DNA of 63,933 nt, counting the filler, from Olpidium bornovanus S191 (taxonomy: Eukaryota; Fungi; Olpidiomycota): the NCBI GenBank assembly GCA_017911155.1. It is 29 parts of 29 records of this genome, joined end to end, with 100 filler letters (N's around TTAATTAATTAA, not from the genome) between each part and the next. Parts side by side here need not be neighbours in the genome. Positions count along the whole stretch, not along the records: positions 18,342 to 20,105 come from JAEFCI010002346.1; positions 20,206 to 23,929 come from JAEFCI010000855.1; 27 more parts are not named here. One strand, 5' to 3'. The notes below the pieces were generated by a model that saw only the letters and a list, made by a program, of their open reading frames with translations, searched no databases and had not been told where the DNA came from. Both the position numbers and the translations under genes were made by a program. Positions 20,088 through 23,929 of the stretch are shown in pieces (positions within the stretch are counted from its first letter, which is position 1; every line of letters begins with the position of its first letter).

Positions 20088-20940
20088 CCCCCCCCCCCCG
20101 CCGCCNNNNNNNNNNNNNNNNNNNNNNNNNNNNNNNNNNNNNNNNNNNNTTAATTAATTAANNNNNNNNNNNNNNNNNNNNNNNNNNNNNNNNNNNNNNN
20201 NNNNNCATGATCATCCAGATCAAGACCCAGAGTACGGTGTGTATAGTGCGCTAGCGCGGTGGTAAGCCGTAGCGCCGGCAAATTCCCACCACGCTGTGGC
20301 CGCGGAGATTAATTCCAAGGCCTGGCACCAGTACCGGCGCCAAAATAACGGCCTGTGGAATATCTCCGAGACCGCCGCCAGTACCGGTGCCGCAATAAGA
20401 GATATCACAAAATATCTCCGAGCCCGCCACTATTGCATAACCGAGACCAAGGAAGGCAGGTTTTCAAGGCGGCGCAGGGTCTCTTATTCGTGGGACAGTT
20501 TATGCTAAGAGTGGGCGAGTGCGCGTCAAGAGAGAGAGGGAGAGAGAGTGGGAGGAAGGAGAGTCGGCTGCCTTTCGTGTGGGTTCGCACGCGTTTAGGG
20601 GGAGAATAAGAAGCCTATGCGTAGTACACAATTGCTCCGTGGCAACCAGCCTCTCACTCTTTTGCAATAGTTGGAATTCTATGCTCGGTTTCTGGAATTT
20701 AATGCGCGGTTTTTGGTTTCCTCACGGTTTCTCCCGTTTTCCCCTCGTACCCTTCGTTCCCCTTCACTACAGACGCCCCCCCCAGGACTGACGAGCTTGT
20801 TTCGGAAGTCACGGAGTATCACGTGGCTGACAGCTCTTTTGGTTTTTAACGAGTCAGATTTGGCTCCACCAACGCCACTTGCCCCGCACCATTACCCCGC
20901 ACTTCAGTCTCCGCCGCGTCCACCCGTCCACCCAGCCACA

Positions 20941-22153
20941 ATGTCTTTCTCTGCGTCCGCTGCCCCTGCGTCCACCCCGTCCGCCTTCACCGAGAGGCGT
21001 CTCAACATCGCCACCCGTCAGATCTACACGGCCTTCTGGGCGCACCAATTGCGCGATTCCCGCAGCTTGCTTGCTGCCGCGGCTCCGTGCATTGCCGATC
21101 GGCCAACACCAGAACGCCAATGCATGATTCGCTTTATCCATTACGCGTGGAGGTTTCGCGCCGCCCACGAGGACGGAAGTATCGAAGTCTGCGTCGCCCT
21201 TCTCCAGTAAGTTCTGGTCCCTCCTTCGTACTGCAACTCCACTTCGATAAATAACCTCTTCCACGTCTACTTGCAGACTTCGCCGATCGATCATTGACGC
21301 CTTCCTCCAGGTCATGAATTGGCCAGCCTCCTTTTGGCTTCCCGCGGATCCTCGCAATCTGGAATTTCTGTTCTTGCCATCAGACACGCAGTATTGTGGC
21401 CCCGGCGGCCCCGAAGATCGTGATTACAATCTGCGTCCCGCTCCCGTTGCCGACGACAGTTATATTCAGGTTCGCGTCCTCATGCCCCCGGTCTCTCCGC
21501 TGCAGCCAGGCGCCGAGCTCGCAGACGATGCTCCGGCAGCCATTTCTCCCCGCGCCCGGAACTCTTGGTTCCCGGAGCTCCGCCAAAGCGCCAAATCCTA
21601 TAATTTTCTCCGCCGGCTCGCGGTCGCACGAGAGGACCCTCCCATCGACATGTCCCGGGTCGACCAGGGCCAAACGCGCTCACGAAATTTTCTTTTCTCA
21701 GACATTTGGCGGAACGTTCCGCGCGACGACGACGACAATCCCGAGGGAGGCGGACGGGACGAGGGCGCCCCTCCCCTTTCGGATTGCGTTACGCGGTCGC
21801 AGGCTCGCGCCAGCCACGCCTCCGCGTCGACGACCAGACACGCGCCTGCCCCGGCAACATCTGGCTCCACCTCCGCCTCCACAACAAGTCGCAGGATCGC
21901 GACCGCCACCGCCCCCAGCAGTCTTCATAGCACACGGTCGCGGACAACCGCCGCCGTCGCCCTTCCGTCGTTGACCTCCGCCTCTTCGGTCCCCGTGCCC
22001 CTTGCTACCAGCGAGCCTTCCTCGGTGGCCGCGCCCGCGCCGCCATCTGCCAGCGGGTCTTCCTCGGCGACCATTGCTCCCGGCGGGGCTTCCTCCAGCG
22101 GCAACGCGTCGGCTCCCGGCTCGGCAGCAGCTGACACGCCGCCCGCTTCGTAG
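20941..22153 (+). CDS. Spliced gene of unknown family, antisense to the neighbouring gypsy integrase (exons 20941-21206, 21277-22153)
   Basis: GTAAGT donor at 21207 and TTGCAG acceptor at 21276 join two ORFs in frame (..CVALLQLRRSIIDAFLQVMNWPA..); paralog at 8661-9028. Confidence 0.75.
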
Positions 22154-22592
22154 TCGCAACGCTATTCCCCTTTCCCCTTCCCTCCAGAGGAAAACAAAAT
22201 AAAAAAAACCGTGAGTATGGTGGAATTTCGAGATCAAGTTTTGGAATTTGGTCTTGGCATTTGGTAGTTGAAACTTGGTCGCCCTGCCTCCTTCATTCGA
22301 GATCCCCGCCATCCCTTCCTCGCCTTCAACCTGACGTTTGGAGCCTCGACGCGCCACACTCCCTCTCGTCGACCTAACCGTCCATAACGCCGCAGATAGC
22401 ACTGTCAGCAAACGTGGTCGACGAGCGAGTATGGTCCGGTCCCGAATGCGTCCTCCGGCAATTTTCCGCGTCCCACGCTGCACGACTTTTTATTTATCCC
22501 GCGTCTCCCGATGGGTATCCAACAATCATAGACTGCCTACGTATCCTCGACGAAGAATCAGGGCGTCGTAGTTCAAATATGCTCGTTGTGTG

Positions 22593-23929
22593 TTAATCGT
22601 GCATTCTTGAGCGCAGGTCTGTTTCTTCTTCGTCACTTCCCAACTCGTCTTCTTTGTTGAGCTCCGCCTCCAGTTGGGTCAGCTCCGTTCGCATCTCACC
22701 AGTTTGACGGCAGAACAGCCAGATCCGAGTTCCCGAATATCGAGTTTTTAACTGGGTTCCATCCAGTTCACGAAGGACGTAGGTTTGGGTTTCTCGGTTT
22801 ACTTCGTCCACAACATAGGGCCCAAACCACCGAGGAAAGAGTTTCCGCTCTATCCGAAGCTCAGTAAATATTCGATCATTTCGCACTAAGACCCATTCTC
22901 CGGGTTCAATGGTTCGTTCCCGTGTCGTTCGGGCTGAGTCCCCCCTCTCCTTTGCCTTTTCTCGTTCTTTCTCCAGTTGCTCCTTAGCCTGTTCAAGGTT
23001 GACTTCCCGTCTTTCTAGCCGCCTGAGCCGCAACACAATAACCTCATCTGTCGTACAGCCATCCTCCCATGGTAGGCCCGCCCAACTTAGCATGTCCATG
23101 TCCACCGGGAAAGGCGGGCACGTTCCAGTTAATAGCTTCGCTGGCATGTGCCCGGTCCATCGGGACACTGTCGTTCGGTCTGCCCACAAAGCTAAAGGTA
23201 ATTTCCTAGCCCAGTCCCGCAGATGACCATTGCAACTTTTTCGCAAGATCCTGAGCAAACTACGGTGGCCTCGTTCAACCTTCCCATTGGCTCCAGGATT
23301 ATAGGGTGTAGTCAGGTGCAATTTAATCCCATACCGTCGAAGAAAGTCTTTAATTCCGGTTTCGTTCAGCTTCCCTCCATCCCCTCGCAGAATATCCACG
23401 CATCCGCAATGTGCCATGATGTCCTCCAAGACGAATCATCCAACAGGTTCCGACCTCTTTGATTGCAATGCTCGTGCCTCAGGAAAGTTACTGAGCTCTT
23501 CTCGTGCTTCCACATAACAGACATGCCCCTCACTCAAACAAGGCGTGGCGACAATGTCAATGTACCACCGTCGATGCAACTGCGTTGGTATCATCAAGGC
23601 TAGGGTGTCCCGGTCTTTTCCTTCGGAGAATTTTCGACATGTTGGGCATGAGCAAACATAATCTTGCACTGATTCGAACATTCGCCCCCAGATAAATAGA
23701 TCCCGGGGTCGGACATAAGTACTCCAGATCCCTCGGTGCCCCGCAACATCACTGTCATAGACTCCTTGCAGGATACGCTTAATTTTAACATCCGTGCAGA
23801 CGACTCGCTTTGGAACGCCACCATCGTGAGGCTGCCTCCATAAGTATTCTTGTTTGAGAAAATACCCTAAGGCTTTCTTACGCGTGGCTACCGTTGCTCC
23901 TGATGGACCATTTGCCCCGTTCGTTTGCC
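22593..23929 (-). mobile_element. Ty3/gypsy integrase (zinc finger + DDE + C-terminal GPY region) with one premature TGA at 23436
   Basis: AGHRG...CSCPTC, WYIDIV, LRGDGG, YNPGANGKVERGH, ALWADRTT, GEWVLVRN, PRWFGPYVV in one frame. Confidence 0.93.

Follow-up and report, generated by a model that had tools for sequence, protein, structure and literature searches.

On a single contig of about 3.7 kb from Olpidium bornovanus (positions 20206-23929 of the window, the whole 63,933-nt stretch of joined parts), the 3' end of a Ty3/Gypsy pol gene on the minus strand and a two-exon gene on the plus strand converge tail-to-tail, their stop codons 440 nt apart with 22154-22592 between them. Our preferred reading, to which we assign a probability of about 0.55, is that the plus-strand gene is a neighbour of the Gypsy element and not its cargo, the two forming an ordinary genomic neighbourhood. 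Judged from its sequence and that of its homologues, the gene is a genuine two-exon member of a tiny, uncharacterised fungal (Olpidium-type) family. The earlier note had instead proposed that the element carries the gene, antisense, between its integrase and its 3' LTR; on a single 3.7-kb contig that holds neither an LTR pair nor collinear copies, what evidence there is, all of it indirect, leans towards two neighbours. No tRNA or Rfam match was found in the piece.

Table 1 Features of the contig, in window coordinates
Feature	Position	Strand	Basis or remark
TGGAATT box pair, 21 nt apart	20672..20699	+	Upstream of gene
C/T-rich tract, ~150-200 nt 5' of ATG	20739..20790	+	Resembles fungal CT-box promoter region; putative function
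87-nt block, 5' leader through ATG	20859..20945	+	Translation identical to P0003 in the P0003 frame
Exon 1 (88 codons + 2 nt)	20941..21206	+	ATG at 20941; start context CACAATGTC; similarity to L001
Spliceosomal intron, 70 nt, GT-AG	21207..21276	+	Splice sites, homologues, lower GC
Exon 2, including stop 22151-22153	21277..22153	+	Relatives, composition
Longest pure polypurine run, 21 nt	22165..22185	-	408 nt past integrase stop, 12 nt beyond plus-strand gene stop
AATAAA, 45 nt past gene stop	22198..22203	+	Likely polyadenylation signal
Second TGGAATT box pair, 21 nt apart	22221..22248	+	Just 3' of the gene's AATAAA
3' end of Ty3/Gypsy pol, integrase	22593..23927	-	Continuous frame, Pfam, relatives; stop codon 22593-22595
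In-frame stop in integrase (TGA), the only one	23436..23438	-	Frame reading; paralogues

The gene model stands as the earlier note had described it, a plus-strand gene from 20941 to 22153 encoding about 380 residues and holding a 70-nt GT-AG intron, and homologues back the intron. The exons (266 and 877 nt) make 381 codons with the stop, and removing the GT-AG segment restores one frame. The donor reads CA/GTAAGT at 21207 and the acceptor TTGCAG/A, ending at 21276; an ATAAC branch-like site lies about 22 nt 5' of the AG, and the intron has a GC content of 0.47, the exons on either side about 0.61. Removal of the 70 nt is supported by homology. The relative P0009 runs continuously over the junction (LLQLRRS, against LLQ/LRRS in the window), as does the soil homologue L001/P0012 (LLEMRRR in L001); in P0002, where the intron has been read through, the same boundary residues enclose 20 unrelated residues, with the same inferred intron length. 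In the O. bornovanus paralogue P0003, about 44 nt of the intron are missing, the donor included. Exon 1 resembles exon 1 of L001 weakly yet specifically (E 3e-5), and L001 itself has a match (4e-9) to O. bornovanus P0010 at its N-terminus. L001 lies on a 1,019-nt metagenome contig and has two introns, at positions that differ from that of the window gene's intron; no transposon sequence was found in its 1-kb contig.

Protein searches and folds were run exon by exon. The conserved region of exon 2 extends to about 21772 and contains the core motif FLFLPSD-x-QYCGP-x-GP-x-D; the tail beyond it (21773-22150) is rich in Ser, Ala, Thr and Pro, which together make up 73% of it. Among 1.84 billion cluster representatives we found ten credible relatives of exon 2, at 35-91% identity. 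The closest relatives of the gene are O. bornovanus proteins, and those of exon 2 on several unrelated contigs are 35-59% identical at the protein level with the motif invariant. Pfam, run on all family members, and a PDB profile search returned no match, the ESM Atlas gave no lead in two queries, and a profile word search recovered no further members; a 601-residue repetitive protein, P0011, matched weakly (E 1e-4, 29%) and was treated as noise. Two AlphaFold runs gave no confident model (mean pLDDT 54.5 and 47.1) and so lent no support to the globular N-terminal half that had been claimed for the product. We picture the 380-residue product as having a helical N-terminal part, a conserved stretch that is acidic/aromatic and proline-rich (FLFLPSD...QYCGP...GP.D..YDPR) and a probably disordered Ser/Ala/Thr/Pro tail; most likely it would be a non-enzymatic protein that engages a binding partner through the short conserved motif.

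The minus-strand integrase likewise agrees with the earlier description of a near-intact reading frame ending at 22593, being one continuous frame from 23927 to 22593 with a single in-frame stop. The frame is truncated by the contig edge at 23929, leaving the last 444 codons only. Pfam recognised the zinc finger Integrase_H2C2 (PF17921; E 3.6e-12, 46.6 bits against a cut-off of 25.5), whereas the DDE core matched rve_3 at E 0.0019, under its cut-off, partly because the in-frame stop divides the core between two queries; full-length relatives at 42-66% identity carry PF00665. The GPY/F module can be read directly as WFGPYVV and is conserved in the alignment of relatives, the C-terminal region has a weak Pfam match to SH3_Tf2-1, and no chromodomain was detected in the integrase by Pfam. 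Its relatives number 42, many with PF00665/PF17921; the best matches are the O. bornovanus paralogues P0013, P0014 and P0015 (86-89% identical), and the closest beyond Olpidium, from metagenome contigs and Riccia liverworts, are 40-47% identical. The reading frames of distant relatives stop at the same place, indicating that pol truly terminates at 22593. At the position of the in-frame stop, P0014 and P0015 have a sense codon; the copy in the window is defective through its premature stop.

In the preferred reading of the locus, two separate units converge on this contig of an Olpidium-type zoosporic fungus: a defective Ty3/Gypsy 3' end on the minus strand, and what would be an independent nuclear gene on the plus strand. 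The 440-nt interval that separates the units (22592 to 22154) would then contain the element's own 3' end, either a polypurine tract (PPT) with a short LTR or a truncation; within 22154-22592 we identified neither an LTR or PPT nor a target-site duplication. The gene comes with signals of its own: a start context, a C/T-rich tract upstream and an AATAAA. It may be transcribed independently from a start downstream of the C/T-rich tract, the 70-nt GT-AG intron then being spliced out and the message probably polyadenylated after the AATAAA at 22198. Its GC at third codon positions (GC3) is 0.65-0.74 against 0.50 for the integrase, a difference of about 5-6 standard errors calculated from codon counts.

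We looked for the two units together elsewhere. The records assign no family member to the contigs of the integrase paralogues P0013-P0015 (1,682 nt for BJ554DRAFT_4052, and 3,995 and 6,404 nt for two proteins named 'ribonuclease H-like'), whose lengths recur for no family member's contig, and no integrase of 153-488 residues to the 2,964-nt contig of P0003 (KAG5462423.1), although missing co-annotated proteins are weak evidence because annotation of the O. bornovanus assembly is patchy. An integrase scan of genome contigs recovered L002 and L003, contaminant eukaryotic contigs in a cyanobacterial bin; they hold distant Gypsy copies from another organism, with no such gene after the integrase. 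Scans for the gene family returned nothing from viral and genome contigs, and metagenome scans with family alignments returned nothing and then only L001; an integrase alignment scan of viral contigs was also empty. None of the metagenome, viral and genome scans (two each) yielded a locus with both gene and integrase.

The paralogue P0003, at 88-91% identity to the window gene, matches its conserved region at 91% and its tail at 86%. An insertion lengthens exon 1 of P0003 by 5 residues, and ahead of P0003 lies an inverted piece of the same gene that has diverged further; its contig continues for about 1.3 kb past the gene stop. This broken, rearranged paralogue is repeat-like behaviour of the gene, of which only two or three O. 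bornovanus copies are on record. Contig size, by contrast, is no mark of a repeat, since short contigs are usual in this assembly (13,695 contigs for 29 Mb; PMC7865070).

The foremost alternative is that the Gypsy element carries the gene as an antisense accessory, under a promoter of its own, in the space from pol to a 3' LTR that starts at about 20775 on the minus strand; we regard this as possible but unlikely. The intron of a gene so carried would survive retrotransposition because it lies antisense in the element's genomic RNA. The geometry suits carriage: the gene runs antisense to gag-pol beyond the 3' end of pol, it converges on the integrase with no recognisable LTR in the 440 nt between the two stop codons, and a G-run followed by TGTAG lies on its far side. 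It is also multi-copy and decaying in O. bornovanus, and the divergence of P0003 is about equal to that of the integrase paralogues, the pattern expected if both had been amplified together in one element. The family is an orphan one, with no cellular relatives beyond a narrow group, and the architecture has precedent in plants (PMC7264820, PMC11963269).

Against carriage stand the distance between the GC3 values of gene and integrase, the lack of any recorded family member on integrase-bearing contigs or on L002/L003, the differently placed introns and transposon-free contig of L001, and a low prior, our literature search having found no fungal case. Homology between the gene locus and P0003 starts at about 20850 and does not extend to the proposed LTR start, P0003 being, however, a rearranged copy. 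A claim of carriage needs an LTR pair or several collinear copies; we found neither a pair nor a second collinear copy, and a second LTR could not be visible in a piece that ends at 20206.

The earlier note had likened a feature at about 20771-20783 to a PPT/LTR start, and the minus strand there (20783-20771) does read eight G, then CGTC, then TGTAG; but the longest purine run lies elsewhere, the G-run and TGTAG fall within the C/T-rich tract upstream of the gene, and they may have arisen by chance. Of the two PPT-like candidates on the minus strand, 20783-20776 and 22185-22165, the second is the better, and a cargo gene would require it on the other side. This run may be an alternative PPT, or nothing more than a C/T-rich 3' UTR. 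A 6/7 match of TATAGTG (20243) with TGTAGTG (20775), considered as an LTR terminal inverted match, was rejected, about 0.75 such matches being expected by chance in 560 nt.

That same purine run opens a second alternative, in which the gene sits in repeated DNA without being internal cargo, either inside a long 3' LTR whose PPT is 22185-22165 or inside some other unrecognised repeat unit; this seems to us improbable. Under the latter option the repeat unit adjoins a Gypsy copy in a transposon-rich patch. The run stands directly before the gene's end, the paralogue is broken and accompanied by an inverted fragment, and the two TGGAATT pairs, with their identical 21-nt spacing, bracket the gene; counted over both strands, the box occurs six times where 0.26 would be expected, and none of 2000 shuffles contained more than 3. 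However, LTRs that contain a spliced antisense gene are unfamiliar, and we know of none. The sequences upstream and downstream of the gene also lack the extended similarity of a bracketing direct repeat (the best local alignment scores 24, while shuffles average 19 and reach 30), and O. bornovanus has only two or three recorded copies of the family.

Finally, that the plus-strand model is no working gene, being a chance ORF in GC-rich DNA or a pseudogene, is highly improbable: the absence of Pfam, PDB and confident fold matches, the low-complexity tail and a P0003 divergence that by rough estimate is near the neutral expectation would all fit it, but they are opposed by the conservation across unrelated contigs with its invariant motif, by an intron whose boundaries are conserved while its interior has diverged, and by an intact 380-codon frame with good splice sites and a good start context.

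If, as we favour, the gene is a neighbour, the result is an ordinary one that puts right an over-reading, and what it provides is a well-supported gene model for an unannotated, lineage-restricted Olpidium protein family. If it is cargo, Gypsy antisense accessory genes would extend from flowering plants to early-diverging fungi, this being the first such fungal case, and the locus would be a natural case of intron retention through antisense placement, the principle behind retrotransposition reporter cassettes. To our knowledge, it is rare in nature for an LTR retrotransposon to carry an antisense gene that has an intron, and we remain doubtful that Olpidium has a Ty3/Gypsy family with an antisense, intron-bearing, own-promoter accessory gene for the lineage-restricted FLFLPSD...QYCGP protein.

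The locus can be set beside several known systems. Its integrase resembles that of non-chromodomain Ty3/Gypsy elements (Metaviridae), in its H2C2 zinc finger, probable DDE core and SH3-like C-terminus with GPY/F; this copy is defective and represented only by its last 444 codons, one of them an in-frame stop. HBZ of HTLV-1 is transcribed from the 3' LTR, unlike the Olpidium gene, whose putative promoter is the adjoining C/T-rich tract. Like the Olpidium gene, HBZ is antisense and spliced, in the 3' part of a reverse-transcribing element (PMC11963269); the two share that logic, on which the earlier note drew, and no sequence similarity, and membership of an element is putative here.

Closer in layout are the antisense additional ORFs of plant Ty3/Gypsy elements, namely gene23 of maize Grande, those of rice RIRE2, and those of Retand in Silene and other plants, with TRP28 (PMC7264820, PMC11963269). 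The Olpidium gene resembles these in being antisense to gag-pol, just past the integrase and apparently under its own promoter, with no known product function. The hosts of the Grande, RIRE2 and Retand ORFs are flowering plants, whereas ours is a fungus; in the plants, most copies of a family have been shown to hold the ORF between their two LTRs, whereas the Olpidium gene is known from one contig without an LTR pair. It also lacks TRP28 or any other Pfam domain, unlike the Retand ORF, and has a spliceosomal intron, whereas introns go unmentioned for the plant antisense ORFs in those two papers.

A plain housekeeping neighbour would not usually be an orphan gene whose genome holds, at another site, a broken paralogue and an inverted fragment of it. 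In its converging units, their differing codon composition and the gene's own signals, the locus nevertheless looks like an ordinary gene-transposon neighbourhood in a compact fungal genome.

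The plus-strand gene model of the earlier note, two open reading frames joined across a 70-nt GT-AG intron, was confirmed base by base, with exons of 266 and 877 nt supplying its 381 codons. Homology argues on three independent counts that the intron is real. P0002, a longer call of the gene encoding family member P0001, translates the intron in the frame of exon 2: its Ser-Lys corresponds to AGT AAG at the window donor and its Cys-Arg to TGC AGA at the acceptor, and in each case exactly 20 residues, unrelated in sequence, separate the two pairs. The intron thus occupies the same place with a diverged interior, and that of the P0002 gene would presumably have the same 70-nt length. 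The window's LLQ and LRRS, which meet at the junction, are continuous as LLQLRRS in the relative P0009 and correspond to LLEMRRR in L001, a homologue on a soil metagenome contig (Ga0190267_10149684); GC content is 0.47 in the intron versus about 0.61 in the exons. Exon 1 belongs to the family as well, matching L001 exon 1 (E 3e-5), which in turn aligns with the P0010 N-terminus (E 4e-9). The two introns of L001 (419-485 and 668-735) are short, at 67 and 68 nt, and their positions are unlike that of the window intron. The family helices at the end of exon 1 and the start of exon 2 (RRxxIxxF...) are alike, hinting at an internal duplication.

Features of the gene and of the neighbouring integrase frame, in window positions
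Feature	Position	Strand	Remark
C/T-rich tract	150-200 nt upstream of ATG	plus	sequence reading
Start ATG	20941	plus	good fungal context
Intron donor GTAAGT	21207	plus	sequence reading
Intron acceptor TTGCAG	ends 21276	plus	sequence reading
Stop codon of gene	22151-22153	plus	381 codons including stop
AATAAA	45 nt past gene stop	plus	sequence reading
Longest polypurine run, 21 nt	22185-22165	minus	sequence scan
In-frame stop	23436-23438	minus	sole break in integrase frame

Exons 1 and 2 were searched separately. Exon 2 had no Pfam match, and a word search with it returned a single relative, P0001 (59%); searched exhaustively, a set of 1.84 billion cluster representatives gave 11 matches, 10 of them seemingly genuine, and a profile word search added no family members. 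P0011, a repetitive protein matching only weakly, was rejected. An invariant core runs through the family: FLFLPSD and then QYCGP-x-GP-x-D, usually with YDPR. Two relatives, P0003 (KAG5462423.1) and P0010 (KAG5462209.1), are from Olpidium bornovanus, and the remainder belong to Logan, ENA and JGI assemblies. These matches place the contig in a fungus, either Olpidium or something closely related, and exclude a human origin.

Pfam searches with all family members, a PDB profile search and the ESM Atlas gave no match, and the translation has no signal-peptide-like N-terminus. The Ser/Ala/Thr tail described in the earlier note is borne out (Ser, Ala, Thr and Pro make up 73% of 21773-22150), but its globular N-terminal half is unsupported, because AlphaFold models of the exon 2 region and of P0010, each with the family alignment, have low mean pLDDT (54.5 and 47.1) and few regular elements: a few short helices and strands are predicted in the former and two long N-terminal helices in the latter. 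Our best guess is a non-enzymatic protein that would act via the conserved motif.

On the minus strand, the near-intact integrase ending at 22593 was upheld. Its frame is open from the edge (23927) of the single 3,724-nt contig (20206-23929) to the stop at 22593-22595, with one internal stop, and its N-terminal part matches Pfam Integrase_H2C2 above cut-off (E 3.6e-12); matches of the remainder to rve_3, SH3_Tf2-1 and MLVIN_C are all sub-threshold, a GPY/F motif can be read directly in the translation, and the Pfam search found no chromodomain. A word-based protein search returned 42 relatives, many with PF00665 and PF17921, headed by three annotated O. bornovanus proteins (P0013, 86%; P0015, 88%; P0014, 66% identity) and then by metagenome contigs and Riccia liverwort proteins (35-47%). 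In distant relatives the frame stops at the same point, which shows that the pol end at 22593 is genuine. The paralogues have a sense codon at the window copy's internal stop; P0015 carries a separate frameshift, so the family is decaying.

Does the Gypsy element carry the gene, or does the gene simply lie beside it? We favour the latter, at a probability of roughly 0.55, and regard carriage as possible but doubtful, because we found no antisense gene of a fungal Gypsy element in the literature searched and genes adjoining transposon remnants are common. A second LTR is absent from the contig. What speaks for carriage is all indirect: the gene behaves as repeated DNA. Alignment of the P0003 copy with the window starts near 20850 and reaches the gene stop, with a 5-residue insertion in exon 1 and about 44 nt of the intron missing, donor included, and upstream of this copy lies an inverted, more diverged exon 2 fragment (window 21740 to 21528). 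Identity to the window is 91% for the conserved part, 88% across the 291-aa exon 2, 86% for the tail and 77% for exon 1, the last on a wrong-frame read; this divergence, by our rough estimate 7% at the level of DNA, is near that of the integrase paralogues. Moreover, no recognisable LTR separates the gene stop from the integrase stop.

As annotated, the 541-aa 'partial' P0003 protein is a modelling artefact: the inverted fragment, translated in the wrong frame, supplies residues ~40-113, ~118-252 are leader, exon 1 and intron remnant in the wrong frame, and only 253-541 are in the true frame. Across 87 nt of 5' leader through the ATG (20859-20945), translation in the P0003 frame is identical, against about 7% divergence in the remaining copy (chance ~0.002 under uniform divergence, by our own arithmetic), which suggests a constrained leader or a gene-conversion patch.

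Several observations speak against carriage. The integrase has a GC3 of 0.50, and the gene 0.71 in exon 1, 0.65 in the conserved region and 0.74 in the tail, a gap that we calculate as about 5 to 6 standard errors. The longest minus-strand polypurine run lies between integrase and gene, not at 20783-20771, where an LTR start had been proposed. No link to a transposon is seen in L001 or the other homologues; the gene is missing from the related elements on contigs L002 and L003; and scans of public collections yielded no locus holding gene and integrase together. Integrase-paralogue contigs of 1,682, 3,995 and 6,404 nt have no recorded family member, and the 2,964-nt contig of P0003, extending about 1.3 kb past the gene by our arithmetic, has no recorded integrase of 153-488 aa; these co-occurrence statements are based on contig sizes and annotation records, L001-L003 being the only relatives' contigs read. 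Short contigs are usual in this assembly (13,695 for 29 Mb; PMC7865070), so contig size is uninformative. Other repeat-linked readings of the gene are improbable, and a non-functional ORF still more so.

L002 and L003 are binned as 'uncultured Synechococcales cyanobacterium' AVDCRST_MAG81 and encode eukaryotic Ty3/Gypsy RT-RNaseH-integrase (the L002 ORF has 766 aa), so that the two represent eukaryotic contamination of a bacterial bin. They share 85% identity to about 72 nt beyond the integrase stop, followed by 600-750 nt that cannot be aligned, after which homology returns. In the window, same-strand TGGAATT box pairs at 20672-20699 and 22221-22248, each with 21-nt spacing, bracket the gene about 250 nt upstream of the ATG and 70 nt downstream of the stop. 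The box occurs six times on both strands, versus 0.26 expected and at most three in 2000 shuffles; the surrounding sequences share no further similarity, and the pairs could be binding sites or repeat remnants. At 20326-20428, within the supposed LTR region, about 50 nt is imperfectly duplicated in tandem (CCAGTACCGG...AATATCTCCGAG units).

Were the gene carried by the element, it would parallel Grande, RIRE2 and Retand, whose antisense additional ORFs lie between pol and the 3' LTR, have their own promoters and, like this gene, encode products of unknown function (PMC7264820, PMC11963269). The present gene differs in its intron, a feature that these two papers do not mention for the plant ORFs, and in lacking a TRP28 domain.
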